Positions 6,628 through 49,911 of a stretch of 64,000 nucleotides of DNA are shown here, one piece after another. A program made the translations under genes and the position numbers. Every line of letters starts with the position of its first letter. Position 1 is the stretch's first letter. The stretch comes from Macrostomum lignano. Taxonomy: Eukaryota. The stretch covers positions 124,001 through 188,000 of the forward strand of contig NIVC01001091.1 of the NCBI GenBank assembly GCA_002269645.1. The letters run 5' to 3'. Below the pieces are notes generated by a model. It was not told the origin of the DNA. It saw nothing but the letters and a program-made list of their open reading frames with translations, and did not search any database.

Positions 6628-9600
6628 CTATACAGAATGCTGTAAGTTCTCGTGTGATGCTGTAGGTGACTGCAGCGGCGTTCTCGGACTGTAGCCTTGG
6701 TCTCCATAGCCGCTGTTGTGACTTTGCGACGGCTGGGTGTAGCCGGCCGTGTAGATCGGCGAGCAGTGATCAACTGAATTGTTTTTTTTTATTGCGATTA
6801 AAAATTTTGCAATACGAAAGTCTAACAGTTTAGCTCTCACTAATAAAAGTTGTACACTTTACTAAATGTATTACCATCTTACTATAAGTAGTGCAGGCTA
6901 AAATAAGTAACGCACCTTACTATGATTAAAAACATGCTACTATAAGTAGTAACCCTACTGTTATTAAAAACATTCTACTACGAGTAGTACACCCTACTGT
7001 ACGTAGTGCACCCTACTATAAGTAGAAACACCCTACTATAAATAGAAAGACCCTACTGTAGGTAGGGCACCCTATTATAAGTAGTAACATTCTACTATGA
7101 ATAGTACATCCTACTATAAGTAAGTAGAAACAACCTACTATAAATAGAAACACCCCACCAATAACTAGTGTACCCTACTATAAGTAGCAAGTTCACTGAC
7201 CGTGGCCGTTTTGTGTGGCCGAACCCGCACTGGGCGTGAGCCGAGTATCGTCAGTGACCGGATTGCTAGAGGCGGCCTGCCGCTGCGAGTTTTTGAGTAG
7301 TGGCATCTGGATAAGAAAATTGAAGAATATGATAAATAAATAATCCTTATATACTATTTCTAACACGTTACTATAAGTAATAAACAGCCTCAAATATAAG
7401 TGTGATATTCCCTGTCTTGATATTTGTTTACTGTTTATTGTTGCCATAAGCATAAAGCAACAGGTAAAAAAAGATAAAAAACACAATGCCCACCTCTGGG
7501 AGGGGATATTTCTCATCCAAGGCTGGCGGAATTGGAGCGCGATTACGACAGCATAGATAGCAACCGAAAGAGAGACTAGCAATCAGGACAACAGCCAGAC
7601 CGATGCAAATGAGCCAAATTGTCATCGACCACTCCATTGAACTGTTTGATCGCCATCTCTTCTGCGAACGAAAAATCAAATGCCGCCCAGACCGAGCCTC
7701 GACAATGCCAGCGCGGCCGGAAGTTCCATAATTGAAACTGTCAGACAACGGCGGCAGGCGGCAGTGAATTCGTCTGGGCAAGGCGCGGTCTCTGCTGCAC
7801 CGGATGCTGGAGTTGGAGCCACCACCCACCGGCCGAATCCAATAGGACTCAATATGCAAGTGACCGTGGCAGCTGGTCTCCGCCAGTGTCAACAGCGAAT
7901 TCTTCTCTTCAATAACGGAAATTTCCGGCTGCATAGTGGAGCCGCCGTCCACCAGGTGGCACAGGCAAGCGGGCCGGCCGGCCCCGTAGCGAGCTAACCG
8001 GACAGTCAGATTGGTCCCAACAGTGTCCACTGGCAGCCCGTCCGAGCTCGCTAACAATGTCCCATTCAGCAGCCAGACTCGCTGGCACTCTGCCAGACTG
8101 TCGCCGGACAATGCCGACTTCTCGCAGGCGACGATCTCGGGCCGGTCGGCGCTGCTGCCAGACCAGACGAAGACTCGCCGACTGCCAAGGCGATCCGTGA
8201 TGTCCAGCAGTTCGTCAGCTGGTGCAGGCGAACTGCTTGACTGCGGCTGCAGAGCGCAGTCCTGCAGCCAGGCGATTTCAACGGCGCCAACGGCTGGCGG
8301 CCCAACACCGACGCTGGTGGCCGCGGCGACTCGCAGCTTCTCAAAACCAGCAACCAGCTGATGCCGCTCCGGTTGCCAGGCAACAAACTCAACCTGCTTG
8401 CCGACAGTAACGCTGCTGTTTCTCCCCCAGCCGGTGTCGCTAACCACAAACTGGCGAATGCGACCGTTGCGACAATGCAACGGTGGCAAAGCGGCGCCGA
8501 TAGAATTCTCGCTTGGCGCCGTCAGCACCAGAGCCGGAGGCGCGCACGGCGCCGATTCGGGAGACACGAATGATTCCACAATGGGATCGGAGTCGTAGCC
8601 TGCATAGTAGCGAGGCTGGCAAACTGCTCGAATATTGAACTGCTCACCGTGGCGCAGCAAGCTGTAGGTGTTGTTGAATGCCAAGCTGGTATGGTTGCTA
8701 ATCTGGGTGGCAACGAGTTGCTGAGCGGATGTCAAAATATCCACCCTGTAGGTGTAGTTCTGATCCGATGTTGTAACGGTCGGACTCTCCCAGCTCACCA
8801 CAAGGCGGCTGTTGGACTGAAAGTTGGCGCGAAGGCCGCCAACTGGTAGCGGCTTCTCTGCGCGTGGGGAATTACAGGATTAGGGAAGTTGAAAACAACT
8901 CAGTATGTGTGGATGGGACTTCTAACAATATCATAAAATAACTATGGGATCGGATCTCTAACAATATCCCAAAACTACAATGGAACGGGATTTCTCCTAA
9001 AATATCCCAAAGCTACAATGGAACGGGATTTTTCCTAAAATATCCCAAAACTACAATGGAGCGGGATTTCTCCTAAAATATCCCAAAACTACAATGGAGC
9101 GGGATTTCTCCTAAAATATCCCAAAACTACAATGGAGCGGGATTTCACCTAAAATATCCCAAAGCTACAATGGAACGGGATTTCACCTAAAATATCCCAA
9201 AACTACAATGGAGATGGGATTTCTCCTAAAATATCCCAAAACTACAATGGAACGGGATTTCTCCTAAAATATCCCAAAACTACAATGGAACGGGATTTCT
9301 CCTAAAATATCCCAAAACTACAATGGAACGGGATTTCTCCTAAAATATCCCAAAACTACAATGGAACGGGATTTCTCCTAAAATATCCCAAAACTACAAT
9401 GTAACGGGATTTCTTCTAAAATATCCCAAAGCTACAATGGAGCGGGATTTCTCCTAAAATATCCCAAAACTACAATGGAGCGGGATTTCACCTAAAATAT
9501 CCCAAAACTACAATGGAGCGGGATTTCACCTAAAATATCCCAAAGCTACAATGGAACGGGATTTCTCCTAAAATATCCCAAAACTACAATGGAGCGGGAT

Positions 9601-12600
9601 TTCACCTAAAATATCCCAAAACTACAATGGAACGGGATTTCTCCTAAAATATCCCAAAACTACAATGGAGCGGGATTTCACCTAAAATATCCCAAAACTA
9701 CAATGGAACGGGATTTCTCCTAAAATATCCCAAAACTACAATGGAGCGGGATTTCACCTAAAATATCCCAAAACTACAATGGAACGGGATTTCACCTAAA
9801 ATATCCCAAAGCTACAATGGAACGGGATTTCTCCTAAAATATCCCAAAACTACAATGGAACGGGATTTCTCCTAAAATATCCCAAAACTACAATGGAACG
9901 GGATTTCTCCTAAAATATCCCAAAACTACAATGGAACGGGATTTCTCCTAAAATATCCCAAAACTACAATGCAACGGGATTTCTTCTAAAATATCCCAAA
10001 GCTACAATGGAGCGGGATTTCTCCTAAAATATCCCAAAACTACAATGGAGCGGGATTTCACCTAAAATATCCCAAAACTACAATGGAACGGGATTTCTCC
10101 TAAAATATCCCAAAACTACAATGGAACGGGATTTCACCTAAAATATCCCAAAGCTACAATTAAGTCAGTGGCTTTATTTCAATAATAATCCCATAACTAC
10201 TCTACAAAGAGGTGGGATTTTTAGAAAGTGTCTATTGGCATAAATTAAAAAAATATGCTTAAAAATAGCTATGAGCGCTATTTCACATATTAATTTACAG
10301 AAAACGATAATAAAATAAGTTTTTTTCCAGCAAAAAACCAACCTTTTTCCCGCCGATCAAATTTCCAAGTGGCGTTGGTGCACCAACCAATATTGTTGCA
10401 CAGCTCAGCAAAAACTTCCATATCATCGTCAAGACCCGTCTCGCACTTATTCCCCCAGTCGCAGTTGCCCAAGCTGTTGCAAACGCAGCTGTCGTTACAG
10501 ACTGGAGTAGAACTTTTATGGCCACTAATATCAATAGTAGCGGTTGTTGTTTTTGTACAATTCCGACCCTCGGGACCCGTGAACCTTCGGACAATGAGCA
10601 TTAGCAGTGATTAGAAATAGTTCAAAAGTTGAACTTTTTCGTTTAAATTTTCGCTGCTCAAAAAGGTTTTTTTGTCTACGTTAGTATTTTTTATGACAGG
10701 CATTACTGCCCATTCCCCCCGACTCCCCTGAGCAGGCGCGCGGATACGACCCTAACTTTATTTATCGCTAGGCATGTACACTTCACCGTGCCTTGGGGGT
10801 TGGCCCTCAAGGCCGTTAATTTCACAAGCAGAGCCAAGCCGAGATTTTAATTTAGCTCCAAATTAATGTGACTGACTGCACTTGGAATCGAGCTTGGACC
10901 GCTGGCGCATCAGACCGCCGCGCTGGAGCCCTGGGCTACGGCCCACCCATCTAAGGTAGTAAAACAAAGCCTGAGTTTGTATTGGCTTCTGTCTATGGCC
11001 AAAACCACAAATACTAGAATAACTACATGGGCCACTCAGCACATTTGCGTGTAAGCTACTTTCAGTTCAGTAGTAAGTTAAATGGAAGCATTTAATATAT
11101 TCATAAAGCCATGGCTCATTTATTAGCTCTTAGTCTTACCCCCAGCTTAAACACTCCAACCGCGCCCGTCCACACTACCCCCCGCCCGCCCCAATTTTTA
11201 TTGCCTTTCTTGGAATTCCAGCATAAAGCTGCCATGTACATTTCAGTGGACTGGCTAATGTACATTATTGCTGAACCAATTAGCAAGCTGTTTACGCCTG
11301 CAAGCTTGGCTACTAAACTTATCAAAGTCATTTCAGCTGCCTTTATTTTTATAAAATAGCTTATGTATTCTTCTTTGCTACTGAACTGAAAGCAGAAAGC
11401 TGTTTTATTAACTATATAAGCCTGAGTGGCGTGGCCCATCTAGTTTTTTAGCATCTGTGCTCAAAACTGAAAAATAAGCCACAAATTGTCACTCAAACAT
11501 GGGCTCTTACTTTAAAATTGTGTAAAAATCTGTGTCTATGTCACAAACATACAGAAAAACTTAAGTAAAATGCATTCAGCATGTGGATCAAGTAATTATA
11601 GCGTCTATTCGTATTTGCTTATAGCAGAATCACGCGGTCAAAAACTACTGCTTAATGATACGCGATATATACTACTGCTTTTTGTCAGCAAAGTGGCGGA
11701 TCAAGTGGAGCAGCAGCCACTGCCACAGAACTGCACTCGGCACCATAGACAATCAAGTGAATCAGTTCTGCTATGGAATTGCCAGCTGTCCGCTTGACTG
11801 GCTTTATCGTCTATGGCCGAGTGCAGATCTTAATTATAAATTTATTAATTTGGTAATAAAATTCAAAAGTGCATCAATGTACTTTTGACACCCGGAATCG
11901 CAGGATATTTTATGGCTTGCACTGAAACAAGAAGACATCGTGCACTTAGTATTTGAGCAAGAATAAATAAATAATAACTCTAAATACAATATATACGAGC
12001 AAAAGGTGTGAGATCTCTGACACTATCTCTCTAACATTTCATATCCCCGACACTTCATATCTCCGACAGTTCATATCAATCTCCGACACTTCATATCTCC
12101 GACAGTTCATATCTCCGACACTTCATATCTCCGACAGTTCATATCAATCTCCGACACTTCATATCTCCGACAGTTCATATCAATCTCCGACACTTCATAT
12201 CTCCGACAGTTCATATCTCCGACACTTCATATCTCCGACAGTTCATATCAATCTCCGACACTTCATATCTCCGACAGTTCATATCAATCTCCGACACTTT
12301 ATATCTCCGACACTTCACATCTCCAACATTTCAAATCTCCGACACTTCATATCTCCGACAGTTCATATCTCCGACACTTCATATCTCCGACAGTTCATAT
12401 CTCCGACACTTCATATCTCCGACAGTTCATATCTCCGACACTTCATATCTCCGACAGTTCATATCTCCGACACTTCACATCTCCGACAGTTCATATCTCC
12501 GACACTTCATATCTCCGACAGTTCATATCTCCGACACTTCATATCTCCGACACTTCATATCTCCGACACTTCATATCTCCGACAGTTCATATCTCCGACA

Positions 12601-14421
12601 CTTCATATCTCCGACACTTCATATCAATCTCCGACACTTCATATCTCCGACAGTTCATACCAATCTCCGACACTTCATATCTCCGACAGTTCATATCAAT
12701 CTCCGACACTTCATATCTCCGACAGTTCATATCAATCTCCGACACTTCATATCTCCGACACTTCACATCTCCAACATTTCAAATCTCCGACACTTCATAT
12801 CTCCGACAGTTCATATCTCCGACACTTCATATCTCCGACAGTTCATATCTCCGACAGTTCATATCTCCGACACTTCATATCTCCGACAGTTCATATCTCC
12901 GACACTTCATATCTCCGACACTTCATATCTCCGACACTTCATATCTCCGACAGTTCATATCTCCGACACTTCATATCTCCGACACTTCATATCTCCGACA
13001 CTTCATATCTCCGACACTTCATATCTCCGACAGTTCATATCTCCGACAGTTCATATCTCCGACACTTCATATCTCCGACATTTCATATCTCCGACATTTC
13101 ATATATCTGACAATTCATATCTCCGACACTTCATATCTCCGACACTTCATATCTCCGACACTTCATATCTCCGACAGTTCATATCTCCGACAGTTCATAT
13201 CTCCGACAGTTCATATCTCCGACATTTAATATCTCCGACACCTCATATCTCCGACACTTCATATCACCGACACTTCATATCTCATAACTCATGTCTTCGA
13301 CAAGCTTAGCAATTGACTCCATATGAAGTGGAGAAGATAGGAATGATGCAACAGCTGTACACACTGAGTAATTACACTGACTATATTAAAAAGCTGACTC
13401 AGCTGACTAGCAATCTGCACTCACAAGTCGCGATACCAGACCCGCAGCGTCAGCCGACCGTCTGGAGGCGGCAGGCCGGCCCGGCGCTGCACCTCGGCTA
13501 GCGGCGGCTCCGCTACCGATGTGAAAGCTTTGCGGTCCAGCCAGTAGAATTTGAAGTCGGGCATTGCGGGCTTGTCTGCAAGGGCCATTGTTGACATTTG
13601 GGAATTTGCGAAAATATCATAGTATTGATTATTTGAAAGGCTTTTTAATCTAGAAATCCTAAGCGGAAAAGGTTTTAACCTAAACTCTAAACCTGGGGTC
13701 AGCAAACCATTTTAACTCACGGACCAAATATCTGGAGGGAAGAGGAGGGGAGAGAGACAGGTGAGAGGAGGTGAAAGATGATAGTGGAGAGATAAGAGTG
13801 GAGAGGGAAGAGGAGAGGAGAGAGGAGAGGTGAGAGGGGGTCGGGGAGATGAGGTGAAAGATGAGAGACTGAGAGTGGAGAGATAAGAATGGAGAGGGAA
13901 GAGGAAGGGAGAGAGGAGAGGTGAGAGGGGTCGGGGAGATAAGGTGAAAGATGAGAGTGGAGAGATGAGTGGAGAGGGAAGAGGAGGAAAGAGGGAGAGT
14001 GAAGCTGGGAGAGCAGGAGACCATACGGGAGAGGAGGGGAGAGAAGAGGGGAGAGGGGCAGAATTGTGTATCACACAGCCAACCTGCAAATCTATTATTA
14101 GAATCCAGAAGACCTTAGAAAACTTACACCCAACAAGCAGCTCCTTGTGGAGGCTGAGCTCCTTGTACAGACTGGCATTCGTCCTAACCTGTCCGACGCA
14201 ATCATAATTGCTGCCATTATGCTCGGCCACTGAGACATTGTCAATAACAACAAATGCCGATCGACCATCTAGTGCAATTGTTGCATTAAACAGAGCCTCC
14301 GGATTGAGACGCCTAACGTAGATTAGGGGCAGCCATGACAGGCCAGCATCTGAATTCACTGCACAGCTGATTGTAAGGCGACTGCCGGCAATCAAGTTGC
14401 GATCGGGGAGCAGGTGCACCG
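6628..14421 (-). CDS. Single-pass type I cytokine-receptor-like protein (Ig-like + cytokine-binding-module-like + FN3 repeats + TM + tyrosine-containing tail); exons 14421-14128, 13575-13425, 10584-10343, 8857-7494, 7306-7201, 6773-6628; 5' (signal peptide) exon not identified
   Basis: All six exons have AG/GT boundaries with matching phases (1,1,2,1,0,1) and give one open frame. It includes an Ig-like segment (LTISCAV...YDCVG), MEVFAELCNNIG...FD...EKPLPVGGL, FN3 LVVSWESP, a hydrophobic TM (IWLICIGLAVVLIASLSFGCYLC), a proline-rich juxtamembrane PIPP and a tail ending ...SGYGDQGYSPR...QHSV*. The family call rests on motif resemblance to gp130/Domeless recalled from memory. Confidence 0.8.
6875..7188. 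repeat. Degenerate ~20-bp intronic minisatellite (CCCTACTATAAGTAGAAACA-like)
   Basis: CTACTATAAGTAG motifs recur through the last intron of the receptor gene. Confidence 0.75.
8966..10160. repeat. 38-bp intronic minisatellite, ~31 copies (AAAATATCCCAAAACTACAATGGAACGGGATTTCTCCT)
   Basis: A 38-nt period is directly visible (ACTACAATGG at 9241 and 9279). Units are nearly identical with no unique spacers. Confidence 0.97.
10686..10948 (-). mobile_element. tRNA-derived SINE-like element
   Basis: The minus strand carries a box A-like TAGCCCAGGGC (10938-10928) and a box B-like GCTCGATTCC (10893-10884), followed by a ~200-nt body and a short A-rich tail. It does not fold into a complete cloverleaf. 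Confidence 0.45.
12036..13275. repeat. 16-bp intronic minisatellite (ATCTCCGACACTTCAT/ATCTCCGACAGTTCAT, with 20-bp CAAT-insertion variants)
   Basis: 16-nt period (12361 vs 12377) with two alternating variants. Confidence 0.97.
13738..14060. repeat. GA-rich low-complexity intronic tract with a ~100-bp internal duplication
   Basis: Purine-rich (GGAGAG/GAGAGG) tract. GAGAGGAGAGGTGAGAGGGG...GGTGAAAGATGA occurs twice. It lies between receptor exons 14128 and 13575. Confidence 0.85.
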
Positions 14422-15480: not shown

Positions 15481-16399
15481 TAATTGTAATCTATGTTGAT
15501 TTTAACTTTTGTTTTTCTCTGCCTGCTAAAGCGTGCTACCTTACCTCAATAATCTATCCTCATTGAAAGCAATACGAAAATTTAAATTTTAACTACTATT
15601 CTTGAAGAAAAAAATAAGTACTGCAAAAATAAAAGTATACTTACTATAATTATAAAGTGACTTCATATCTAGTTTAAATGAAGTCACTGATTGGCCAAGG
15701 ACAAAGTAGCAAATTAAAATAGCCACCAAATTGGTGGTATACCAGATCTTTAATTTAAAATGCTGGAAATTAAAACATAGCAATAGATATTAATAGTATT
15801 CTATAAAAACAAAACAAAACTTTCAGATCCTATTAAAATACTCTATAAAAACTATAGGTTGTATGTTTCTACATTTTTACAAGGTGCTTCTTAAAGTGCA
15901 CTTTTGATTTGGATATATATAGGTTTTGCTAGAGTTCCATTATAGCTATTGATTTGACTATAGGAAGTTAAAGATTTAATAGATTTTTAGATAGAACACA
16001 TAAATAGATCATATGGCTATGGAATACATATTTCCCCATTCAGATATTTAGTTCCAATGTCTAATAATATTGGCCACTTAATAACTGAGATTGAAAGGCT
16101 TAAAATATCATTAGAAGCTTCATACATGCGCAACCTCCAAAATTCAGTCTGCCATGCAACTTTGTTTTAGCAAAAATGCGACAGTTTTTGGCCAAAAATG
16201 TGGTAATAAAAACCCTGGCCTAAAGCAAAATTAACGCAACTTTGGGTAAATGGCAAGACTAACTATGACTGTCTTATTAGGTCAAAATGCCTCCTCAGCT
16301 ATTTAGTAATACTACTAGCAATCTACGCCCCCCGTTGGGAAGCCAAAGAAATGCAATACACGTTTTTTTAAATAAGCTACATGTATCCTTGAAATCTTA

Positions 16400-29651: not shown

Positions 29652-31200
29652 TTAAATTTCGACCTCCATTCCGATGTCTGGCAGGTCAGGATCGTCTTCT
29701 TCTAGCACTTCAGGATGGCACAGGCTCGGTTCGAATAGTTGGGTGCCTCGCAGATCAGGCTGAGCTGCGGCCTGCTGTTCCGGTGCGGGCTGATCAGCTG
29801 AGTCCTCTTCGCTTTCCTCGCTCGACTCGTAGGGCAAAATTGGCCGTTCAGTTTGTTGCTGCGGCTCCTGCGGTCGTTCGGCCATCATTTGCGGCACCTT
29901 GATGATGTTGTTCCGGTGTACAAGCACTTCGGCTGGGCGTCCTCGTTGTGCGGTGGCAGGTTTTATCCAGTAGGCGACTTCTCCGACTTTCTTAACAACC
30001 TTATACATGCTCTTATACGGCCGGTGAAACTTGGGCAACTCTCCCAACTCGAGCTTCGGGTTGGCCAGGCAGACCAGGTCTCCTGACTGCTGTTCTGCTG
30101 GCCTCGGCCGGTTCTCATAATACTCTTCTCGGCGCTGGATCTCTGCTCTCAGTCGCTGTCGCACAATACGCTCGGTCTCGGCCAGTCTGCGCTGATGCTT
30201 GGCAATGTACTCTGGGAGGTCAGCCGATACATCCAGGCGGTCTAGGGTGTTGTCGATAGGGTGGGCACTCCGTAGACAACATAGTGCGGCGAGAAACCAG
30301 TAGCACGATTGACGGCGGATCTTAGTGCAGTCAAAGCGGCTGGCAGCATCTTGTCCCACTGTTGATCAGATGATCTTCTAGGAGACAGGTGAGCACCTTC
30401 TTAATATTCTTATTACACGATTCGGCTTGTCCATTAGCCCAGGGCGAATATGGCGGCGTCGTTGTCTGCCTGATGCCGTAGACTTCGCAGAAGTGTCGGA
30501 ACTCATGCCCTGTGAATTGCTTGCCTTGATCCGAATGAATCCAAGTGGGGATTCCGGTGATCGGAAAGACTTGCTCTTGCAGGAGCGTGATTATTGTTTT
30601 GGCGTGCTGGTTCTTCATGGCGAAGGCGAAGGGGTATTTCGACGTGGTGTCGACGTAGGTCAGGATGTACTCATTTTCTCGATCTGTCGGGTCTCCAGTG
30701 GTGCCCAGGATGTCGATAGCGCATCGCCCATAGATTTCGTAGACCGGGAACGATTGTACATGCGCCGGAATTCGTCGCCGTCCTTTGCTTAAAGTGCAGG
30801 TCTGGCAGGAAGCGACATGGTCGGACACTGCCTTGGCCAGGGCAAGTCGCCAGAATTTTTCGCGCACTTTAGCGATGGTGAGGTCTCGGCCCATGTGTCC
30901 GCAGTAGGGCGAATCATGCAGTTCGGCAAACACGGTGGCATCGAGACTTCTTGGCAGGACGATCCGTGCTTTATCTTCTTCGCCAGCATCTTCGAGATGT
31001 ATTACTAATAGTCCATCGTCTCGGACTTCGAGCTGTTCGTAAAACGCTAACAGGTTTCATTCGTCTCTAGTAATGTTCAGACGTTGATTCATCGGCGGCT
31101 TCGGTTGTCGGGTTTCCAAAAGATTGATCACCATGGCGATGGCGGAGTCAGCTCGCTGATGGGTCTGGAGCTCCTCACAAGTGACTGGCCTCGGGATATG
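29652..31200 (-). pseudogene. Gypsy integrase (HHCC zinc finger, DDE core, GPY/F-like C-terminus), frameshifted
   Basis: H(DSPYCG)H...C(QT)C; AIDILG, IHSDQGKQF and NGQAES catalytic motifs. The C-terminal KFHRPYKSMYKVVKKVGEVAYWI...VHRNNI is in a different frame (track ORFs 30331-30933 and 29652-30359). Confidence 0.92.
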
Positions 31201-31530
31201 ATCTGTCAAGTTCCGAGTTCGGCGTCTGTCCGTAGGATTTGCTGGCGCGGCATCGGCTGTGGCGGCATGGTTCAGGGTCTGGAGCTCCCTCCGCATGATC
31301 GCTACTCTAACCGGTTGCCGGGCTGTTGATGATTTTGAGGGCCGATCCTTGTCGGTTACTTCGGCGTCACTGTCGTCAGATTTGGATTTGTCAGCAGATG
31401 ATGATGAGTCAGCGGAGCTGTCGGCGTTGCTGCTGAACTTCACCTTCTTGAACTTAGGGCAGCGAGCGGGTTGGCAGCGGTCATCTCTGGCTGCACTGTG
31501 GTCGCTGTCCTCGTCACCTTCAGCTAGTAG

Positions 31531-32385
31531 TCAGCGGCTCCTATTAGGGCAACATGTCGTGCTACTGCTAAAACTGGTGGGCGACCTCCGTGAGTCCCAA
31601 TAACGACTGGCAGATGGCCTCGGCTTCGTCGCCGGCGGTTGCAGCTCTGTCAGCGGCTTGCTGTCGGCTGGCGGTGTTGCTGGCGGCGTAGCCTCGCCGT
31701 TGGACTCTTTCGGTTTGGGCGGCGGCCTCAGTCGATTTCGGCGGGTCGATGGCTTCTTGCTCGGAGGAGGACTCGGGTGGCTGCTGTCGTGGACCTTTGG
31801 CGCCGCTGCGCCAGTTATCGCGGCTGGCTGCTTACTTTGGTCCTCGTCAGCTGCCTCGCGCTGAGCCTCCTCCAAGCATTCGGCGTCTTCCTCGGGCCGT
31901 CTCGAGAGACCGTCGGCATTTTGATGCTGACTTGATTTGCGGTGCTGGATTTCGAACTCAAATTCGCTGAGTCTCTGTAGCCATCGTCCAAAGATGCCTA
32001 CTTGCTGAGTTCGCCTTAGGATCCAGGTCAACGCGGCATGATCGGTTCGGCAGATGAACTTTTTGGCCAGCAGGTAGAAGCGGAAGTGTCGCATCCCATG
32101 TACGACTACCAAGAGTTCCTGTTTAGTAATCGGGTATCTGGCTTCGGCTGGCTTGAGTCGCCGGGAGAAATAGCTGATTGGGCGCTCAATCCCATCAGCT
32201 TGGCGTTGGCTCAGACAGGCTCCGATCCTGGTCGCAGTTGGGTCATCAGTACATAGCCGGTTCCAGGTGCCGAATCCTAGGACTTCACACTTGGAGCCGG
32301 TGTCAAGCAGAAAAGCAAAATAGCGGCCCTGAATCTCACCAGTTAGAAACGGATCCCTTCGAGGTCGCTTGGGTGCAGAGGTCAA
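31531..32385 (-). pseudogene. Gypsy pol remnant: N-terminal half of aspartic protease fused in frame to RNase H; reverse transcriptase absent
   Basis: FAFLLDTGS (protease) is followed ~20 aa later by IGACLSQ...RPISYFSRRL...Y...KQELL...F...TDHAAL...RWLQRLSEFEFEIQHR...NADGLSR (RNase H). There is no YxDD motif and no RT-sized interval. Confidence 0.9.
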
Positions 32386-32442
32386 GTGCGGAGGCGGTCT
32401 CAGCAGTGGCCTGCTGAGCGACTAAAGTCCTCGGCGGGGACT

Positions 32443-33843
32443 TTATTGCTGGCTCGGCTGCTGGATGGCGCTGCCCCCGATGGCGCGTCCAGCCGTCCCG
32501 TTTCCCGAGCTGCCGTTTCGCTGGGGCACAGTGCTGGCCGACCGTCGATGCGGGCACTCATCGCTGCGATGCTCACGATTGCACCTGTAGCACATTGCGT
32601 TCTGCCGCCGCAGCTGATAGGGCGGCGGGCGCGAACTCGTCTGTTGCTGCGACTGCTGCGGCTGCTGATGTTGTCGACGTTGACCTCCTGCTGGCGGTGT
32701 CGTCGGCGGCGGGTTGCTGCCGTCTCGCGGTTGCTGAAGCTGATGGAGCTGTTGATGCTGCACATTATGTGTGCCGGGTGTCGTAAATTGGGCGCTTCCG
32801 TCGGCGCTGCGGCGAGGAGTCGGGGGTGCCAAACATCTGGAGCGTTGGCCCCACGAGTCCCGCGGCTGATGGCGAGCTGGTTCCCATGGCTCCGGGGCGT
32901 CGTTATCGCGCGATCCTTGAGAGTAGAACTCTCGCATTTCGTTGCTTAAGGTTTCCAGAATTCGTCGCTGCTCTTGCAGAGTTTCCGCTTGTTGTTCCAT
33001 CACCTCACGCAACCAGTTTTCCTCGGGCCGAGATGACTTGGCGTCGTGTTGCACCGCAGTGGGCGTCTGACTGTCGTCATTCTCGAGAACCCGTACATGG
33101 CGGCGGTGCTACTCGCTGAGCCAGGCTAGCTGCTGTCTCCAGGCGTAGCACAGCCCTTCTCGCGGCAGTCAGATTCTGCGGTCTCATTAGGATTAGCTGT
33201 TCTCGGGCCGACTGGGCGATTCGCACTCCAACCGTGAACTGATCCACCAGTTCAGCCTGCTTCTGAACTGGGGTAAAGTGCGGAAACGCTCGATCGGCTA
33301 GAGCAATTAATTGATCGCCGTAGTCGTCAACGCTCTCATTCTTGCCTTGCTGGCAGCTCCAAAACTGCTCCCGGTACTCCAGCGTGTCGGCTACATGCGT
33401 AAAGCGTTCAGACAATCGCTGTTTGAACTCACCAAACGTTAGGTTGTCTGGAAGCTCTATCCTGACGACTGTGGGATAGGTTGTGGCGATGTCCAAATTC
33501 ACTAGGACCTCCGCCTTCTTTCGTCTATCGTCTATGATCCCGTTGAGCTCATAACGCTCCTCGAGAGCCTGGATCCAGACGTCGAATTCCTGGTTTTGGG
33601 TGTACCGCTGAATCTTGACCGGTTTTGGCACCCGAGCTCGATCCTGCTGCTGGGGTTGCTGGTACACATGGACACATGGTGATGGTGCTGCGGCTGGCCC
33701 AGGCTGGTCTGCTCCAAACGCCGTCGCACCTCGTCGGTCACCGCCCGAATCATCTCGTCGTAGGTCGGTCTTGTTGCTGAATTGTCGGGGCCTGCGGCGT
33801 CAGCTGTTGCGTCCGCGGCCGTTGAATTATTAGTTGAAGCCAT
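32443..33843 (-). pseudogene. Gypsy gag (capsid-like domain + degenerate zinc knuckle), frameshifted
   Basis: ATG at 33843 (MASTNNST...) leads to FDVWIQALEERYEL...F...Q...ESVDDYGDQLIALADRAFP...LVDQFTVG (retrotransposon gag). CYRCNREHRSDEC knuckle is in ORF 32443-33054. Confidence 0.88.
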
Positions 33844-35758: not shown

Positions 35759-36297
35759 TCCTTCAAAAATTCTAGCTATAGGGGCCTACACCTAACCATG
35801 GCCTAGGCCATAGCTATAAATAATTTTTTGTAGCTCATATTATAATTATCTAAAAAGGGCTATTGAAATAGTATTCTATTTTTATGCCTGGTTATGTTTT
35901 CCCTTTTAGCTCAATGTATATTTTATTATTTTATTATTTATTTTAGTACACTATCTTTGCTATATCAAAATATTATACTCTAGTTTACTTTTATGTGATA
36001 TAAACTTTGTTTACTTTCTTTTGTATCCCCAAAATTATATATTGATTGGTTAAAAGTTTAGTACTATGTATAGGCAGCCTTCCTATAAATCATCTAAATA
36101 AGATATATTTAAATAGTTTAAGAATCAGTACAGTTTATTATCTAAATATTTAAGAAAAATATCCTTTTTTGTTTTCAAGCTTTTAATAGCAAGTTTATAA
36201 TCCAATGCGAATGCATGTTGCTGCTAGGTGTCAGCAACTAAAGCAGTCGTCTGCTAAGATAAAATAGCCAAGTCTAAAAGTGAACATTTTTGAAGCA

Positions 36298-39013
36298 ATG
36301 TCCAGTTGCTACAACTGCGGAGAGGTTGGCCACTTTGCCCGCGACTGTCCCAATGAACGAGGCGACGGTGCTGGCGCTGCTGGCCAACAAAGAAAAACCG
36401 GCCGAGGCGGTGGAGGCGGCGGGCGAGGTCGCGGTCGCGGTCGCAGTCGACGAGCCAACCGGCAAGATGGAGGCAGCGACGGCGGCGGTATTGTTGACAA
36501 TAACGGCGTGCCGGTGTGCTTCAAGTGCAACCGATCCGGCCACCTGGCCCGCAACTGCTACCGGGGCGGCCTGACCCGCTGCTACAAGTGCAACTGCCTT
36601 GGCCATGTGGCCAGTCAATGCCAGCGAGATATTGTTGCCGGGGCCTGCTACAACTGCGGCTCGTCTGAGCACATTCAGCGCGACTGTCCGGATCCTTTGG
36701 TGAAATCTTGCTACAGGTTTGCATTTTGTTCCTTTCATTGTTTGCCATTGGGAAAATGTTGTACGTTTTACGAGCATATCATGCGCTATATTCCCTCACG
36801 CTCACTTCTCTGCCTCTTTCTCTGCCTCCCTTTCTCTGCCTCCCTTCCTCTGCCCCTTTCTCTGCCTCCCTTTCTCTGTCTCCCTTTCTCTGTCTCCCTT
36901 TCTCTGCCTCCCTTTCTCTGCCTCCCTTTCTCTGCCTCCCTTTCTCTGCCTCCCTTTCTCTGTCTCCCTTTCTCTGCCTCCCTTTCTCTGTCTCCCTTTC
37001 TCTGCCTCCCTTTCTCTGCCTCCCTTTCTCTGCCTCCCTTTCTCTGCCTCCCTTTCTCTGTCTCCCTTTCTCTGCCTCCCTTTCTCTGTCTCCCTTTCTC
37101 TGCCTCCCTTTCTCTGCCTCCCTTTCTCTGTCTCCCTTTCTCTGCCTCCCTTTCTCTGCCTCCCTTTCTCTGTCTCCCTTTCTCTGCCTCCCTTTCTCTG
37201 CCTCCCTTTCTCTGTCTCCCTTTCTCTGCCTCCCTTTCTCTGCCTCTCTTTCTCTGTCTCCCTTTCTCTGCCTCCCTTTCTCTGCCTCCCTTTCTCTGCC
37301 TCCCTTTCTCTGCCTCCCTTTGCCTCCCTTTCTCTGCCTTCCCTTTCTCTGCCTCCCTTTGTATGCCTCTATGCCCCCTTTCTCTGCCTTCCCTTTATCT
37401 GCCTCCCTTTCTCTGCCTCCCTTTCTCTGCCTCCCTTTCTCTGCCTCCCTTTCTCTGCCTCCCTTTATCTGCCTCCCCTTCTCTGCCTCCCCTTCTCTGC
37501 CTCCCTTTCTCTGCCTCCCTTTATCTGCCTCCCTTTATCTGCCTCCCTTTCTCTGCCTCCCTTTGTCTGCCTCCCCTTCTCTGCCTCCCCTTCTCTGCCT
37601 CCCCTTCTCTGCCTCCCTTTCTCTGCCTCCCTTTATCTGCCTCCCTTTCTCTGCCTCCCTTTCTCTGCCTCCCTTTGTCTGCCTCCCCTTCTCTGCCTCC
37701 CTTTCTTTGCCTCCCCATTCTACCGATCATGTATCAACCGTCCTCCACTGAGACTTAATTAAACCTGATTATTTAAGGATCCGTGGCCATACGTTTTTAT
37801 CACCATTACGACTGCATCAACAGCAAATGTGCTATCAAAACCATCAGCGCCTTGGTTATTTGCTCTGAAAGCCAATAATTGTGTTTAGAAGCAAACGAGA
37901 GCTAGACTAATAGGCTACAAGAAAACAGCTTATTTCAATCGCTTACTGTCTTGAGTAGCACTATTAAGATTTTGTCATCCATTCTTATGCCCAATTTGCC
38001 TGAAACAGATGCGGCGACAAAACTCACCTGGCCAAAGATTGCCCGAATAGCGCAGCGGAGGATCGGTCTTGCTACAACTGCGGCCAAGTCGGCCATCTGA
38101 GCCGCGAGTGCACGCAGGCTAAAACTGGACAGCCAATCTGCTATAAGTAAGTGTAGCCCTGTGCGCTTGGAGCTCCCCAGTTGCTGGGCCAGCCTCCCAG
38201 ATCCCCAGTTGCTGGGCCAGCCTCCCAGATCCCCAGTTGCTGGGCCAGCCTCCCAGATCCCAGTTGCTGGGCCAGCCTCCCAGATCCCCAGTTGCTGGGC
38301 CAGCCTCCCAGATCCCCAGTTGCTGGGCCAGCCTCCCAGATCCCAGTTGCTGGGCCAGCCTCCCAGAGTGTCAGTTGCTGGGCCAGCCTCCCAGATCCCC
38401 AGTTGCTGGGCCAGCCTCCCAGATCCCAGTTGCTGGGCCAGCCTCCCAGATCCCCAGTTGCTGGGCCAGCCTCCCAGATCCCCAGTTGCTGGGCCAGCCT
38501 CCCAGATCCCCAGTTGCTGGGCCAGCCTCCCAGATCCCAGTTGCTAGGCCAGCCTCCCAGATCCCCAGTTGCTGGGCCAGCCTCCCAGAACCCCAGTTGC
38601 TGGGCCAGCCTCCCAGATCCCAGTTGCTGGGCCAGCCTCCCAGAGTGTCAGTTGCTGGGCCAGCCTCCCAGATCCCCAGTTGCTGGGCCAGCCTCCCAGA
38701 TCCCAGTTGCTGGGCCAGCCTCCCAGATCCCCAGTTGCTGGGCCAGCCTCCCAGATCCCCAGTTGCTGGGCCAGCCTCCCAGATCCCCAGTTGCTGGGCC
38801 AGCCTCCCAGATCCCAGTTGCTAGGCCAGCCTCCCAGATCCCCAGTTGCTGGGCCAGCCTCCCAGAACCTCAGTCACCCAGCTCGCAGCATATTTGCATA
38901 TACTCGAAAGCAAAATGTCAATCTTCACTAACAGCTGCCAGAAGCCGGGCCACGTATCCAAAGAGTGCCCAGACAAGGCGGACGCTGAGCAGGGCATCCC
39001 AGTCAGCGAATGA
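36298..39013 (+). CDS. CNBP: Cellular nucleic acid-binding protein (CNBP/ZNF9/Gis2 family), 211 aa; exons 36298-36716, 38009-38146, 38935-39013
   Basis: Spliced at phase-2 GT-AG junctions, the protein has seven CX2CX4HX4C knuckles with an RGG/RG-rich box between knuckles 1 and 2, the diagnostic CNBP layout. AATAAA follows the stop. Confidence 0.92.
36800..37720. repeat. 14-bp CT-rich minisatellite (TCTCTGCCTCCCTT) in CNBP intron 1
   Basis: Direct periodicity; it explains the spurious PFLCLPFSASLSL ORFs. Confidence 0.95.
38176..38870. repeat. 28/29-bp minisatellite (CCAGTTGCTGGGCCAGCCTCCCAGATCC[C]) in CNBP intron 2
   Basis: Direct periodicity, with a recurring GAGTGT variant unit. Confidence 0.96.
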
Positions 39014-41102: not shown

Positions 41103-41657
41103 TCAGACCCCGGCCCCGGTCGGCTTCTTGTCTGTCGAAGCCTTGCGAGCGTCAGCAGACGACTTGCGATTGTCCACAGAGGACTTCCTGCTGGCCGGCT
41201 TCTCTGGCGGAATGATCAGCACGGGCCGGTGGGCGTGGTGCAGCACGTAGTCGGACACGCTGCCAAGGAATGTACGGCGCAGGGTGCCCATGCCGCGGTT
41301 GCCCATGATGATGATGCTGACGTTCTCCTCTTTGGCCACCTCGACAATTGACTGGCCGGGATTGTTGGTCACTCGTTCCACGAATTTGGTCTCGTTACTG
41401 ACGCCCAGCTGGCGGCAGCGCTCCCGCACCGCTTTGCCAATCTGGCTGCCGGCTTTCATTGCGTCCTTCATCATGTTGGCGTACACTTCGGAGTTGGCCA
41501 TCAGGCTGGCGCCGGTGCCCCGCGGCAGCGCCGGCGGCTCGATGGCGTACGTGAAGATGAGAACATCGGACGACTTGTTCATGTTGTCGGCGTAAAAGGC
41601 CACGGCCCGATGGCTGTGGTCGCTGCCGTCCACAGCGATAAGAATGCGCCGGGTCAT
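41103..41657 (-). CDS. Universal stress protein (UspA domain), single exon, 184 aa
   Basis: RRILIAVDGSDHS at the N-terminus and IIMGNRGMGTLRRTFLGSVSDYVLHHAHRPVLIIP with an intact G-2X-G-9X-GS ATP-binding motif. Strong GC3 codon bias. Confidence 0.95.
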   Translation of the reverse strand: MTRRILIAVDGSDHSHRAVAFYADNMNKSSDVLIFTYAIEPPALPRGTGASLMANSEVYANMMKDAMKAGSQIGKAVRERCRQLGVSNETKFVERVTNNPGQSIVEVAKEENVSIIIMGNRGMGTLRRTFLGSVSDYVLHHAHRPVLIIPPEKPASRKSSVDNRKSSADARKASTDKKPTGAGV

Positions 41658-44047: not shown

Positions 44048-46749
44048 GACCCCAGGGAAGTTGACAGGTGCGGTCCTAAATCATGTGCAAAGTATAATAA
44101 AAGTCACTTGTCTAGACATCCTGGCACCAAAAGTGACTGCAAAACGCCCATAAATCAAAAGAGAAGGTAACAGAGCGAGTGGGGAGAAAGCTGGAAAGAC
44201 CTCTTTGACCCAGACAGGCTGGAGCCAGAAGTGACAGCTAGACCGCCATGAGTCACTAAAAACAGTGAAAAAGTCACAAATTAGGGGGTCAGAATGAGGT
44301 TAAAAAAATTCCTCCCAGACTTAGTGTCGCTTGTCGATCTAGACTGTTAGAGGTCAATCCGTCTCAGACCCAGACAGCCTGACCTTCAAAGATGCGTAAA
44401 CAACCCAAAATTAAAATCCTAAGGGAAGTACATTGAGTTGAGTATATATCTAACTTAAATTAATAATAATGTCATAAATTAGTATAGTGCGGTTTGCGGT
44501 TTTAAGATTGAAAAAAGATGCGTCCTCATCAAATAGTATTGAGAACTACATGTAATACGACCACTTTTTGGATATTTTAGGTAATTATTATGTGTGAAAA
44601 AAGTTTATGTAATTTAGCTATTTAAATATGAAGTTTTTATTACATTTAATAAAAGGATTTCTTCATACAGTTTCATGCATTTTATATGGGCTTGTTTCAG
44701 GATTTACGTCGAAATACGATCAGCTTTTTATGTTATTTAAGAAAAGGATGCTGTGAAATAGAAAAAAATGGACTTGTTAAATAAGTGAATTTTTAAGTAA
44801 GTTAATATAGCTTTTTTATTATGACTATATGTATTTTGCTGCTAAACAAATGCAAAATTGTGTGACAGAAGCATTGTGTAGTAGTCTTCGTGAAAGTTTA
44901 ATAACTCAATTAAATTCAATAGCTGTTTGAGACGTTAGCTAGCTTTATTTTAATTATTTTGTTTAAACAAGTGCATCTAATGAAATCAACTTCAAATTCA
45001 AAATAGAGTTTAATTTGCAGGTTTTTTGTTTTTATAGTTTATTATGAGCCAGCTCCCTGGGCAAACACTTTAAAAACACCAAAGTAAAACTATTCACTAC
45101 GTAACGCGTATAATGTTGTTGATTTTCAGAATTCTGACGCAAAAAACGCAAATTATACTACTATCTGAAAATGAAGTAAGTAGTATACAAAAACGCTATC
45201 CTAAGCGTGATTCAATATGTAGTTGTAATAATCCATGTGCTCATATTAATTCCATGTACATTAATCCCTATCTATCTCAAATTGTACATTAATTCCATGT
45301 ACATTAATCCCTATCCCAAATTGTCTATCCCCAATTCTACATGTACACTCACATTAATCTACAGTGTCATCCCCGTAGTCATAATAATCCATGTGCTCAT
45401 ATTAATTCCATGTACATTAATCCCTATCTATCCCAAATTGGATATGTACATTAATTCCATGTACATTAATCCCTAACTCAAATGTCCATGTCTATCCCCA
45501 ATTCTATATGTATGCAGTATGTGCATTAATCTACAGTGTCATCCCCAGCGCGCGCGCGCACCAAAATTACAACTCGAAACCCTACTACATGTACAGTGTA
45601 CAATCTCATCTACTACTACCAAATGAGTCAACTAATTGTGTAGCCTACAACGTAAATGTATATTTCCAATGTACATTTCTCAGACATTTGAATAATACGG
45701 GTCGGAGTCTATATGTACATCGATAGCCTCTATACTCATATCCGCTACATACCCCAAAAATTAGGTATGTACATTTTCACCCTCGGAGAATGTAGGTTTG
45801 AATATGCTGATAATTTATTCGAAATCACTTATAAAATACACATACTTTCATATAGAGGCGGGCCTGTACAAACTCTCGCCAAGCGATGGGGTGGAGTTTG
45901 CGTCATCCAAGCCTCTCCCAAGTCTGCCCCCCAAATACAAGACTGTGTTGAAGCAGTGCTTTATATTTCTATTGACAGTGGGTATGATACAAGACGCTTC
46001 GTCGCGCTTTAATTACAGTAAACCATCCCCTCGAAGCTCCTATACTGAATGCTGAATCACCCTTTAACTCGGACCATAGTCAAATTCAACCCTGTTCGAA
46101 AACAGCCACCCCTCCGATGTTTACCAGACACAGCGCAGACCCCATAACAAATCGAGCTAAATTTTAACACTCGCCCCTGTTCTCTCTGTCCCCCCTTCTA
46201 AATGCCAAGGAATTTCGACCCTCTCTCCATTTTCAGTGTACAAACAGATCTTTCCACAGCACAGACCTATATTAAACTTCAAAACCCCTCTCTTCTCCGA
46301 TTACGTCATCCATGCCGCCCCAGATAGCAAGAAACCAACTTTTAATGCACACATCAACCCCGCGAATCTGAGCAAATCCGAGTCCGCCAACCTCTACCTA
46401 CATTGACAAACCCCAGCTGCATTTGTAAATGTACACAGCCTATGAATCAGTGTCTCCACCGCATGCAATTCTGATTTACTTGATTCTGAAATTTGTAAAA
46501 TGTATAAGTCACCCTTGCGTTTACTAGAAGTAGTGAAGTCCACAAATTTAAATACGTGAGGCTATTCAATTCTGCCTCTCCGCCTCCCCTACCTTCTCAC
46601 TTCAAGCTTTCAGACTTGGTCTTTGAGACGGTTTAATCTGTTAGAAGCAGGAATGAATCATGCACTGACCTCTCCATACAAAGTAATGTTGGAATTTCAA
46701 ACAAGAAATTTGGTTATTTTGAAAGCTAAATGACTAGAAATGCACATTT

Positions 46750-48900
46750 TTCATTAAAATGCAGCTTTTCACAGTTTTTATGCATTTTTACGTTAAAATG
46801 CAGACTTTGTTGATCAAAATCAGTAGTTTCATCACTAGAAACCATACTTTCAACAGCTAATTTGTCCAAATGTCGCTTTCAACTTGACCTTAGACAGCTT
46901 TTAAGCAGGAATGAACCCCACACAAACATCCACAAGCCAGCCCAAAATCAGCCAAAGACATGGCTATTGAAGCCTAAATTGCTAGAAATGAGCATTTTTT
47001 CATAAGAAAATACAATTTTTCACAGTTTTTATGCATTTTTACGTTAAAATGCAGACTTTGTTGATCAAAATCAGTAGTTTCATCACTAGAAACCATACTT
47101 TCAACAGCTAATTTGTCCAAATGTCGCTTTCAACTTGACCTTAGACAGCTTTTAAGCAGGAATGAACCCCACACAAACATCCACAAGCCAGCCCAAAATC
47201 AGCCAAAGACATGGCTATTGAAGCCTAAATTGCTAGAAATGAGCATTTTTTCATAAGAAAATACAATTTTTCACAGTTTTTATGCATTTTTACGTTAAAA
47301 TGCAGACTTTGTTGATCAAAATCAGTAGTTTCATCACTAGAAACCATACTTTCAACAGCTAATTTGTCCAAATGTCGCTTTCAACTTGACCTTAGACAGC
47401 TTTTAAGCAGGAATGAACCCCACACAAACATCCACAAGCCAGCCCAAAATCAGCCAAAGACATGGCTATTGAAGCCTAAATTGCTAGAAATGAGCATTTT
47501 TTCATAAGAAAATACAATTTTTCACAGTTTTTATGCATTTTTACGTTAAAATGCAGACTTTGTTGATCAAAATCAGTAGTTTCATCACTAGAAACCATAC
47601 TTTCAACAGCTAATTTGTCCAAATGTCGCTTTCAACTTGACCTTAGACAGCTTTTAAGCAGGAATGAACCCCACACAAACATCCACAAGCCAGCCCAAAA
47701 TCAGCCAAAGACATGGCTATTGAAGCCTAAATTGCTAGAAATGAGCATTTTTTCATAAGAAAATACAATTTTTCACAGTTTTTATGCATTTTTACGTTAA
47801 AATGCAGACTTTGTTGATCAAAATCAGTAGTTTCATCACTAGAAACCATACTTTCAACAGCTAATTTGTCCAAATGTCGCTTTCAACTTGACCTTAGACA
47901 GCTTTTAAGCAGGAATGAACCCCACACAAACATCCACAAGCCAGCCCAAAATCAGCCAAAGACATGGCTATTGAAGCCTAAATTGCTAGAAATGAGCATT
48001 TTTTCATAAGAAAATACAATTTTTCACAGTTTTTATGCATTTTTACGTTAAAATGCAGACTTTGTTGATCAAAATCAGTAGTTTCATCACTAGAAACCAT
48101 ACTTTCAACAGCTAATTTGTCCAAATGTCGCTTTCAACTTGACCTTAGACAGCTTTTAAGCAGGAATGAACCCCACACAAACATCCACAAGCCAGCCCAA
48201 AATCAGCCAAAGACATGGCTATTGAAGCCTAAATTGCTAGAAATGAGCATTTTTTCATAAGAAAATACAATTTTTCACAGTTTTTACGCATTTTTTACGT
48301 TAAAATGCAGACTTTGTTGATCAAAATCAGTAGTTTCATCACTAGAAACCATACTTTCAACAGCTAATTTGTCCAAATGTCGCTTTCAACTTGACCTTAG
48401 ACAGCTTTTAAGCAGGAATGAACCCCACACAAACATCCACAAGCCAGCCCAAAATCAGCCAAAGACATGGCTATTGAAGCCTAAATTGCTAGAAATGAGC
48501 ATTTTTTCATAAGAAAATACAATTTTTCACAGTTTTTATGCATTTTTACGTTAAAATGCAGACTTTGTTGATCAAAATCAGTAGTTTCATCACTAGAAAC
48601 CATACTTTCAACAGCTAATTTGTCCAAATGTCGCTTTCAACTTGACCTTAGACAGCTTTTAAGCAGGAATGAACCCCACACAAACATCCACAAGCCAGCC
48701 CAAAATCAGCCAAAGACATGGCTATTGAAGCCTAAATTGCTAGAAATGAGCATTTTTTCATAAGAAAATACAATTTTTCACAGTTTTTACGCATTTTTTA
48801 CGTTAAAATGCAGACTTTATTGATCAAAATCAGTAGGTTTCATCACTAAAAACCACAATTTTAACACAAAATTATCACAAATGCTACTTCTGGAACTCTG
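46750..48900. repeat. 251-bp tandem satellite, 8 full units, in the left arm
   Basis: CAGACTTT anchors at 46801, 47052, 47303, 47554, 47805, 48056, 48308, 48559 and 48811. Degenerate units continue to ~49400. Confidence 0.96.
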
Positions 48901-49911
48901 AGACAGCTTTGAGCAGGAATTATAATCGCACACGGATTACCCGAGCCAGTCCAATTTCCACTAAAACCATGATTTTTTTAAAGCTAATTCTTAGAATTTC
49001 TCATTCTTTCGTTTAATAAAGGCCAATTTTCACAGTTTTATTATTTTCTAACGTTAAAATGCTAAATGCGAATTGATCAAACTTAGTAGTTTCATCCCAA
49101 AAACCATAATTTCAACCGCTAATTTGTCCAAATGCTGATTTCAAAGTTGGCAAGAGACAGCTTTCGAGCAGGAATGAGTCACACACTGATCTCCATATGC
49201 ACACCCCGCCCCAAGTTGGAATTCCACCCAAGGCATTTTCATTGAAAGCTAAATTACTAGAAATTGCACATTTTCGTTTTAAAAAGGTCAATTTTTACAG
49301 TTTTAACTCTTTTTAACGTTAAAATGCTGACTTTATTGAACAAAATGAATCACTTCATTCAGTAGAAACCATAATTTTTACAACTTAAAAATGCTGTTTC
49401 ATCATCAAATGTGTGTATTTGGTACGTGTAATACCCCTCAAGAAGTCAGGGAAGGGATTATTCTTGAATATTGGGTTAAAACGTACAGTTTGCTATAAAC
49501 CTAGCTTATAAAGCCGAGGGATGTTCCATAAGTACTTATACTTTTGCATGCTGCTCAGGAACTACGCAACCAATCATTGTAAGTTTTATGTCGCTGGAAA
49601 GCGGCTTTACTCATCTTTAATCTGTCGCCAAAATCATTTCGTTCTGTCAACTATGTCAAAAGTTACAACAAAAAACGTAGTCAAAGGTCACCCATAGACT
49701 TACAAGAAATTTTCAAAATCAAAACTTCAAAGTTCAGCACGCAGAGTTATTTTGGATTCTACATAATGCATTCTTTTTTGCTTCATAAGCGAATGCCACA
49801 CCCTTTTCGTCTATGGAAAATACTGGCCTAAGCTTTCACAGCATCTTAATCTTAAGATCACAGCATCTTAATCTTGTAAAGTTTCACCACCTTGGCTGCT
49901 GCTGCATCACC

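Follow-up and report, generated by a model that had tools for sequence, protein, structure and literature searches.

A candidate, highly divergent class I cytokine receptor gene with a gp130/Domeless-type layout in the flatworm Macrostomum lignano

Class I cytokine receptors are known from vertebrates, from insects and from certain other invertebrates. In Drosophila Domeless, the WSXWS motif is degenerate and box 1 is weakly defined, with a YxxQ site serving STAT, while in GHR the WSXWS motif is replaced by YGEFS with no loss of function. The Drosophila equivalent of the tall vertebrate receptors drives stem-cell niche signalling and injury-induced regeneration. Macrostomum lignano is itself a stem-cell and regeneration model, in which transgenesis and RNA interference work. 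Here we analysed a stretch of 64,000 nucleotides from this flatworm (contig NIVC01001091.1, positions 124,001 to 188,000; hereafter the window, with positions counted from its first letter), which carries on its minus strand a gene for a membrane protein with immunoglobulin (Ig)-like and fibronectin type III (FN3) domains. The best-supported reading, which we consider probable, is that its product belongs to the class I cytokine receptor superfamily, evolves fast and has the 'tall' layout of gp130, LIFR, the leptin receptor and Domeless. A literature search for a flatworm domeless or cytokine receptor found no description of one.

Exon structure and translation start

The receptor gene had been proposed, from the letters of the window alone, as six phase-compatible exons between positions 6628 and 14421. 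All six are present on the minus strand (14421..6628; Table 1) and encode one protein, with canonical AG acceptors and GT donors and a phase chain of 1-1, 1-2, 2-1, 1-0, 0-1 and 1-stop that contains no internal stop. Both outer limits of the proposed range are exact, with 14421 being the first base past an AG acceptor and 6628 the final base of the stop codon. Chained phases in combination with canonical sites are far beyond chance. What did not stand is the beginning of the gene: exon A opens in phase 1, and the start therefore lies further upstream, where we found an additional 5' exon that ends in phase 1 at a GTAAGT donor. The result is an intact seven-exon gene with a coding sequence of ~2.4 kb, free of stops and frameshifts, and a product of ~807 aa. 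A tblastn search across the whole window found a single copy, which rules out a tandem duplication there.

No in-frame ATG is present in the genomic sequence of the 5' exon, which directly follows a tttccag acceptor. The M. lignano spliced leader, CGGTCTCTTACTGCGAAGACTCAATTTATTGCATG, has ATG as its final three bases (PMC8629364), which would explain why the exon lacks one of its own; joined to the exon, this ATG reads MHFKLKIWYTTNLVAILICYFVLGQS..., a typical signal peptide. At the locus of a paralog (PAA94799, locus L001), the protein annotated as "partial" likewise starts right after ttttcag, in frame with the leader ATG. We infer that the start codon of the receptor is probably supplied by the trans-spliced leader at the acceptor of the 5' exon. 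Public models of the family that start 'NFQ...' (window 15763-15790; L001 9990-10000) translate the polypyrimidine/AG acceptor itself, aat ttc cag, and the true start of these models, PAA94799 included, is probably the spliced-leader ATG.

The introns of the receptor gene consist mostly of tandem repeats (window 8958-10160, 12034-13283 and 6847-7187). A 38-bp unit occurs 31.6 times with 95% matches in the intron 5' of exon D, a 16-bp unit 76 times in the intron between exons B and C, and a 19/20-bp unit in the intron between exons E and F; the latter two yield spurious repetitive open reading frames such as NCRRYEVSEIDM. Exons set among satellite-filled introns, with a first exon devoid of an in-frame genomic ATG, might be taken for a decaying pseudogene or for an artefact of joined reading-frame fragments. 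We regard this as very improbable, given that the ~2.4 kb of coding sequence is uninterrupted and its splice sites are canonical throughout, that three near-identical copies have been modelled independently, and that the absent ATG has an explanation in the spliced leader and a parallel in one of the paralogs. Furthermore, two divergent paralogs share the same architecture at about 30% identity, which points to purifying selection.

The gene is real and already modelled in public data, but it has never been classified. Three M. lignano entries in UniRef (A0A1I8J4V3, A0A1I8GRC0 and A0A1I8FXI5) are 98-100% identical to the spliced protein over the aligned residues, and the only existing UniProt name is "Fibronectin type-III domain-containing protein". 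Junctions A|B, C|D and E|F are common to all three models, while B|C is found in two of them, A0A1I8GRC0 beginning exon C later. Within exon D, all three take a donor at 7593/7592 (GCT|GTTGTC) that falls inside the transmembrane (TM) helix; 33 residues are lost by this junction, which deletes the second half of the helix and the entire box-1-like motif. An alternative donor at 7494 (GAG|GTGGGC) retains the full helix. We prefer the latter because it is by far the better splice site, because the Kyte-Doolittle mean over 19 residues is 2.48 with it versus 1.57 with the public junction, and because a homologous helix and juxtamembrane stretch occur in both paralogs, contiguous within one exon in one of them. 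The donor at 7593/7592 is weak, and the public junction may be a prediction artefact. The corrected gene model regains a spliced-leader start, a full helix and a juxtamembrane motif, all of which are absent from the public models.

Class assignment of the ectodomain

From its N-terminus, the product reads as a signal peptide followed by an Ig-like domain, a cytokine-binding module of two domains and one clear FN3 domain; a further ~210 unclassified residues lead to the TM helix and a tail of 101 aa. Sixteen N-glycosylation sequons lie N-terminal to the single strong hydrophobic helix. Together with the signal peptide that the putative spliced-leader ATG would open, they suggest a heavily glycosylated type I single-pass membrane protein. 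The Ig-like domain of exon A resembles Pfam LIF-R_Ig-like at E=3.8e-4, below the gathering score, and has a predicted local distance difference test score (pLDDT) <50 in the full-length AlphaFold model. The length of the membrane-proximal ~210 residues would fit two more β domains.

To place this protein among others, we searched 1.84 billion (1.84e9) representative proteins exhaustively by phmmer with one public model of the gene (P0001) as the query and E<=1e-3 as the threshold. Five proteins were returned: the query, two M. lignano proteins and two fish Ig-repeat proteins, the last matching just the Ig-like N-terminal region (query residues 29-120). Among these 1.84e9 representatives, no relative outside M. 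lignano was found at E<=1e-3 other than the two fish matches, and no arthropod or mollusc protein was linked to the family at E<1e-3. The two M. lignano proteins, with their cluster members, constitute two more groups of paralogs, PAA65088/PAA80294 (about 610 aa) and PAA94799 (814 aa), making three with the window gene. Over the Ig-like domain, the module and the next FN3, each is about 30% identical to the window protein, and the overall layout is the same. PAA94799 lies on a contig other than that of the window gene, and the family is therefore dispersed rather than tandem; the neighbour upstream of PAA94799 on its contig encodes a protein with a PKD/K319L-like domain (L001 1-5293). Word-indexed searches did not widen the family: an alignment of the three paralogs retrieved the query cluster only, and one paralog sequence (P0009) retrieved only frameshifted public models of its own gene, with no added diversity.

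A search of PDB with the single sequence by phmmer gave no significant match. With a profile of five family sequences, the gp130 ectodomain was the best match (E 7.7e-5), aligned in register from the last D2 strands through D3 into D4; Robo2 was matched through generic FN3 at E 5e-4. When the profile was restricted to the module, nearly all of the 56 matches listed were class I cytokine receptors, headed by the leptin receptor (5.4e-5) and gp130 (1e-4) and followed by IL-12 p40, EPOR, IL-31RA, PRLR, IL-13Ra2 and OSMR. Both WSXWS-bearing domains of the leptin receptor were matched. Titin was the sole unrelated protein with a comparable score, neogenin and a few chance matches having E-values of 0.2 or worse.

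Profile-profile alignment by hhalign gave a similar picture. An alignment of Ig, module and FN3 against D1-D4 of human gp130 reached 90.9% probability (P 1.1e-6, 168 columns), and the module alone 74.6% (P 2.6e-5), whereas the controls, fibronectin FN8-10 and FN9-10, reached 5.4% and 7.7%; the module gave nothing against human GHR (0.6%). The gp130 sequence used here was entered by hand and agrees with the PDB-chain stretches printed by HMMER. Three correspondences to gp130 that had been named in the original prediction were reproduced residue for residue by both HMMER and hhalign. Intron phases over Ig|D1a|D1b|D2 are 1-2-1, the phase-2 intron separating the sites of one disulfide pair from those of the other; a 1-2-1 pattern is conserved in vertebrate class I receptor genes.

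Because the full-length AlphaFold model is poor, we relied on a model of the module only, which has a mean pLDDT of 58.6 (55-75 over module domain 2) and folds into two β-sandwich domains. A Foldseek comparison with PDB, proposed along with the original prediction, returned cytokine receptors as all of its best 24 matches, at template-modelling scores of about 0.5; four of the top 50 were other proteins (three titin tandems and one fibronectin). The quality of this model permits its use as supporting evidence only. Taken together, a two-domain FN3-like cytokine-binding module appears to be present, with moderate support.

Several observations weigh against this assignment. WSXWS is absent from the window copy, its position being occupied by YDSDP (8583-8597). 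The region of the first conserved disulfide (C-x9-12-C-x-W) holds no cysteines, reading FKFYWLDRKAFTS, and a 23-residue Cys-rich insertion sits within the loop of the second. Statistical support is moderate, E lying at about 1e-4 to 1e-6, and comes from a profile of just three divergent sequences, with titin FN3 tandems falling within one order of magnitude in the module-only HMMER search. The full-length model has a mean pLDDT of 35.9, so that neither the Ig domain nor the final ~210 residues of the ectodomain could be assigned, and in its Foldseek list cytokine receptors are interspersed with titin, NCAM and contactin. A Pfam scan of the product gave nothing above thresholds, the sub-threshold matches being generic fn3 at the start of exon D and LIF-R_Ig-like on exon A. 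We put down to chance or composition two others, namely DUF6479 across the membrane region and, at E 6.5e-3, a TB domain in the Cys-rich exon. Of the 'tall type I cytokine receptor' originally proposed, the module stood up to PDB profiles, hhalign and Foldseek, while WSXWS and the first disulfide are missing from this copy.

The paralogs appear to bridge the gap between the eroded window copy and the hallmarks of the class. The alignments to the PDB receptors (gp130, LepR and IL-12p40) all end exactly at their WSXWS, and at the aligned position the paralogs carry WSDNS and WSEPS. The former lies in P0004 (phmmer E 1e-23), as HWSDNS, and the latter in P0007/P0009, as GWSEPS, together with CEWPNRESENFRC. 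In P0009, CEWPNRESENFRC preserves the first disulfide pair as C-x11-C, a canonical spacing; P0004 resembles the window protein at this position (FKFYWLDRKAFTS). Two invariant cysteines occupy the place of the second module disulfide (C-x9-10-C), and in P0004 they form CDNYNDRTGVC, a C-x9-C with the spacing of gp130. An extra pair, CNxxGWC, occurs in all three paralogs on the hairpin aligned to ENALGK of gp130.

These data also bear on a different explanation, namely that the family consists of lineage-specific Ig/FN3 surface proteins in adhesion, guidance or matrix binding, which bind no cytokine and resemble gp130 only as any FN3 tandem would. Such a reading would account for the generic fn3 that is all Pfam offers below threshold, for the FN3 tandems of titin, LAR/PTPRF and Robo2 that occur among the profile and Foldseek matches at similar E-values, and for the loss of WSXWS and the first disulfide from the window copy; there are also no orthologs outside M. 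lignano that could act as a phylogenetic anchor. However, the module taken by itself draws almost exclusively cytokine receptors from PDB by sequence, and only these among the best 24 by fold, and the hhalign P-values of gp130 (91%) and FN8-10 (5%) lie about four orders of magnitude apart. In addition, the paralogs keep WSDNS/WSEPS at the exact WSXWS site, one of them with a canonically spaced first disulfide, and a single Ig domain combined with a short tail bearing conserved tyrosines is unlike known adhesion families. We therefore hold the surface-protein explanation to be possible but considerably less probable than membership in the cytokine receptor superfamily. Two specific classes can be set aside: a receptor phosphatase of the LAR/RPTP sigma type is ruled out by the 101-residue tail, which holds no protein tyrosine phosphatase domain, and the Robo/DSCAM type, with five or more Ig domains and a long CC-motif tail, by the single Ig-like domain before the module and the short tail.

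Signalling elements and the surrounding window

In class I receptors, box 1 is a proline-rich motif no more than ~20 residues away from the membrane, at which the FERM domain of JAK docks. Directly after the helix of the window protein lies a proline-rich, box-1-like sequence, RNRAPIPPALDEKYPLPE, in which R, one aliphatic-Pro and Tyr are invariant in the three paralogs. The tail contains no Pfam domain and no enzyme domain. Frames below 6628 are of low complexity, with nothing kinase- or phosphatase-like, which rules out a catalytic domain downstream. Two tail tyrosines are invariant across the paralogs. GYSPR (6682-6696), near the C-terminus, is conserved in the paralogs, with G, Y and R invariant, and is preceded in the window copy by YGDQ (6697-6708), a YxxQ motif. 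In known receptors, YxxQ docks STAT3 or STAT92E.

By analogy with gp130 and Domeless, a secreted helical cytokine would bind at the elbow of the module and pair two receptor chains. Pre-bound at the proline-rich juxtamembrane motif, a tyrosine kinase of the cytosol (JAK, should M. lignano possess it) would phosphorylate the conserved tail tyrosines of KYP, YGDQ and GYSPR, which might then recruit SH2 proteins such as STAT. The cytokine-JAK-STAT axis put forward in the original prediction is suggested by this analogy. Three points count against it: box 1 is weak, with PxP in the window paralog only and one invariant proline; the tyrosine-kinase families tabulated for S. mansoni include Src, Syk and Tec but no Jak (PMC3135232); and a 2026 survey, self-contradictory on JAK, did not detect JAK/STAT or gp130-type receptors in Platyhelminthes (PMC13203501). 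A planarian stat5 homolog, on the other hand, has been reported (PMC8797187). Our own literature search on JAK/STAT in Macrostomum met only name collisions or unrelated mentions.

The same observations would suit a true relative of the cytokine receptors that does not signal through JAK, being instead a decoy, a co-receptor or a non-signalling chain, similar in this to Drosophila Latran/Et or soluble gp130, or coupled, in a lineage where JAK may have been lost, to a kinase of the Src, Syk or Tec type. A weak box 1 and the S. mansoni kinase list are in keeping with it, and the junction of the three public models, if it represents real transcripts, would yield an isoform that is poorly anchored in the membrane (hydropathy 1.57) or does not signal. 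Yet the tyrosine motifs conserved in the tails of three paralogs argue for signalling, the donor behind that junction is poor and may be artefactual, M. lignano is early-branching and need not share the losses of parasites, and the planarian STAT homolog exists. We consider this alternative unlikely. Likewise unlikely, and speculative, is a reading in which Macrostomum has a small lineage-restricted family, with at least three paralog groups, of gp130/Domeless-type receptors that have diverged out of reach of ordinary sequence searches and, in its boldest form, work without canonical JAK, through another cytosolic tyrosine kinase acting at KYP and GYSPR.

Elsewhere in the window, a giant, near-perfect inverted repeat spans 45096-54683, with arms at about 45096-49739 and 51044-54683 that are 98-100% complementary and contain ~251-bp tandem units in unequal copy number. 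Between the arms is an intact mariner/Tc1-type transposase frame (49813-50997, plus strand) with Transposase_1, DDE_3 and HTH_48. The whole represents a foldback structure, an artefact of assembly or else a transposon whose terminal inverted repeats measure ~4.6 kb. A GC-rich block (0.56-0.57) on the minus strand at 29652-33667 carries the frames of a Ty3/gypsy-type long terminal repeat retrotransposon in separate pieces (Table 1). A large plus-strand gene at 55284-61429, a candidate NLR/NWD-like innate-immune or signalling NTPase, encodes DUF4062 and a STAND NTPase domain (NACHT/AAA_16); its 1050-aa C-terminal frame matches nothing in Pfam. A single-exon universal stress protein (Usp) gene lies at 41103-41657 on the minus strand (Pfam E 2e-28). 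Lastly, a plus-strand frame at 36280-37760 encodes a CNBP- or gag-like CCHC zinc-knuckle protein with three knuckles and continues into a long repetitive frame built of LPPFLCLPFSASLS units; strand skew is extreme in this region.

Table 1. Coordinates of the receptor gene, the parts of its product and the retrotransposon frames in the window
Feature	Coordinates	Strand	Basis and remarks
5' coding exon	15762..15645	-	tblastn with public-model N-terminus, sequence, phase check; hydrophobic leader
Exon A	14421..14128	-	Ig-like domain; C..W..C pattern; five N-glycosylation sequons; identical in public models
Exon B	13575..13425	-	Cytokine-binding module domain 1, first half
Exon C	10584..10343	-	Module domain 1, second half; Cys-rich insertion; MEVFAELCNNIGWC...FD strand-hinge, aligned to gp130 IEVWVEAENALGK...FD
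Exon D	8857..7494	-	Module domain 2, next FN3, membrane-proximal stretch, TM helix, juxtamembrane
Exon E	7306..7201	-	Cytoplasmic tail, Ser/Thr/Gln-rich
Exon F	6773..6628	-	Tail end; YGDQ, GYSPR; TAG stop 6628-6630
Module domain 2, FN3 fold	8857..8547	-	Opens EKPLPVGGL, ends YDSDP; Pfam fn3 E~6e-3 to 1e-2
Next FN3	8546..8268	-	PCAPP...CRNGRIRQF...ATSVGVGP; aligns to gp130 D4; conserved in three paralogs
Membrane-proximal ectodomain, ~210 residues	8267..7632	-	No Pfam or PDB match; pLDDT about 20
TM helix WSMTIWLICIGLAVVLIASLSFGCYLCC	7631..7548	-	Kyte-Doolittle; aligned with paralog helices
Juxtamembrane RNRAPIPPALDEKYPLPE	7547..7494	-	Directly after helix; A-P-I-P; proline-rich, box-1-like
Ty3/gypsy-type gag	33077-33667	-	
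Ty3/gypsy-type CCHC-bearing frame		-	
Ty3/gypsy-type reverse transcriptase-RNaseH	31531-32385	-	
Ty3/gypsy-type integrase	30331-30933	-	

Comparison with known receptors

If the window gene does encode a class I cytokine receptor, it would add a highly diverged receptor of a known kind to a phylum from which no such receptor had been recognised. Flatworms would then have retained receptor-level cytokine signalling that surveys scored as absent, and that apparent absence would be, at least in part, a detection problem arising from fast sequence divergence. A bona fide receptor would also offer a handle on whether cytokine-type signals act on neoblasts. Should the JAK-independent reading hold instead, it would mean that, in a regeneration model amenable to transgenesis, the pathway of a class I cytokine receptor has been rewired.

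The closest described system is gp130 (IL6ST) with its tall relatives LIFR, OSMR, G-CSFR, the leptin receptor, IL-31RA, IL-12Rb/IL-23R and IL-27Ra, whose order of parts is that predicted for the window protein and which provide the best sequence-profile, hhalign and fold matches of the window family. Like gp130, the window protein has a single helix and a tail devoid of catalytic domains, which bears tyrosine motifs, YxxQ among them, and next to the membrane a box-1-like proline stretch. The two are 26-28% identical in the aligned part. Unlike gp130, the window protein has YDSDP in place of WSXWS and has lost the first disulfide of the module, while its Cys-rich insertion and the hairpin cysteines of CNxxGWC are not seen in gp130. 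Its membrane-proximal ~210 residues are unrecognisable, and its tail is far shorter, at 101 versus 277 residues.

The 'short' receptors GHR, PRLR and EPOR share the two-domain module fold, and two of them, PRLR and EPOR, turn up as matches by fold and by profile. However, they possess neither the N-terminal Ig domain nor the extra FN3 domains, and the hhalign probability for GHR was negligible. Drosophila Domeless, with its short partner Latran/Et, is unproven as an ortholog, the family being unlinked to arthropod proteins at the threshold of our search. On established knowledge of Domeless rather than on sequence, the likeness lies in the layout predicted for the flatworm family, in a degenerate WSXWS, a weakly defined box-1-like stretch and a YxxQ motif, and in the presence of more than one paralog.

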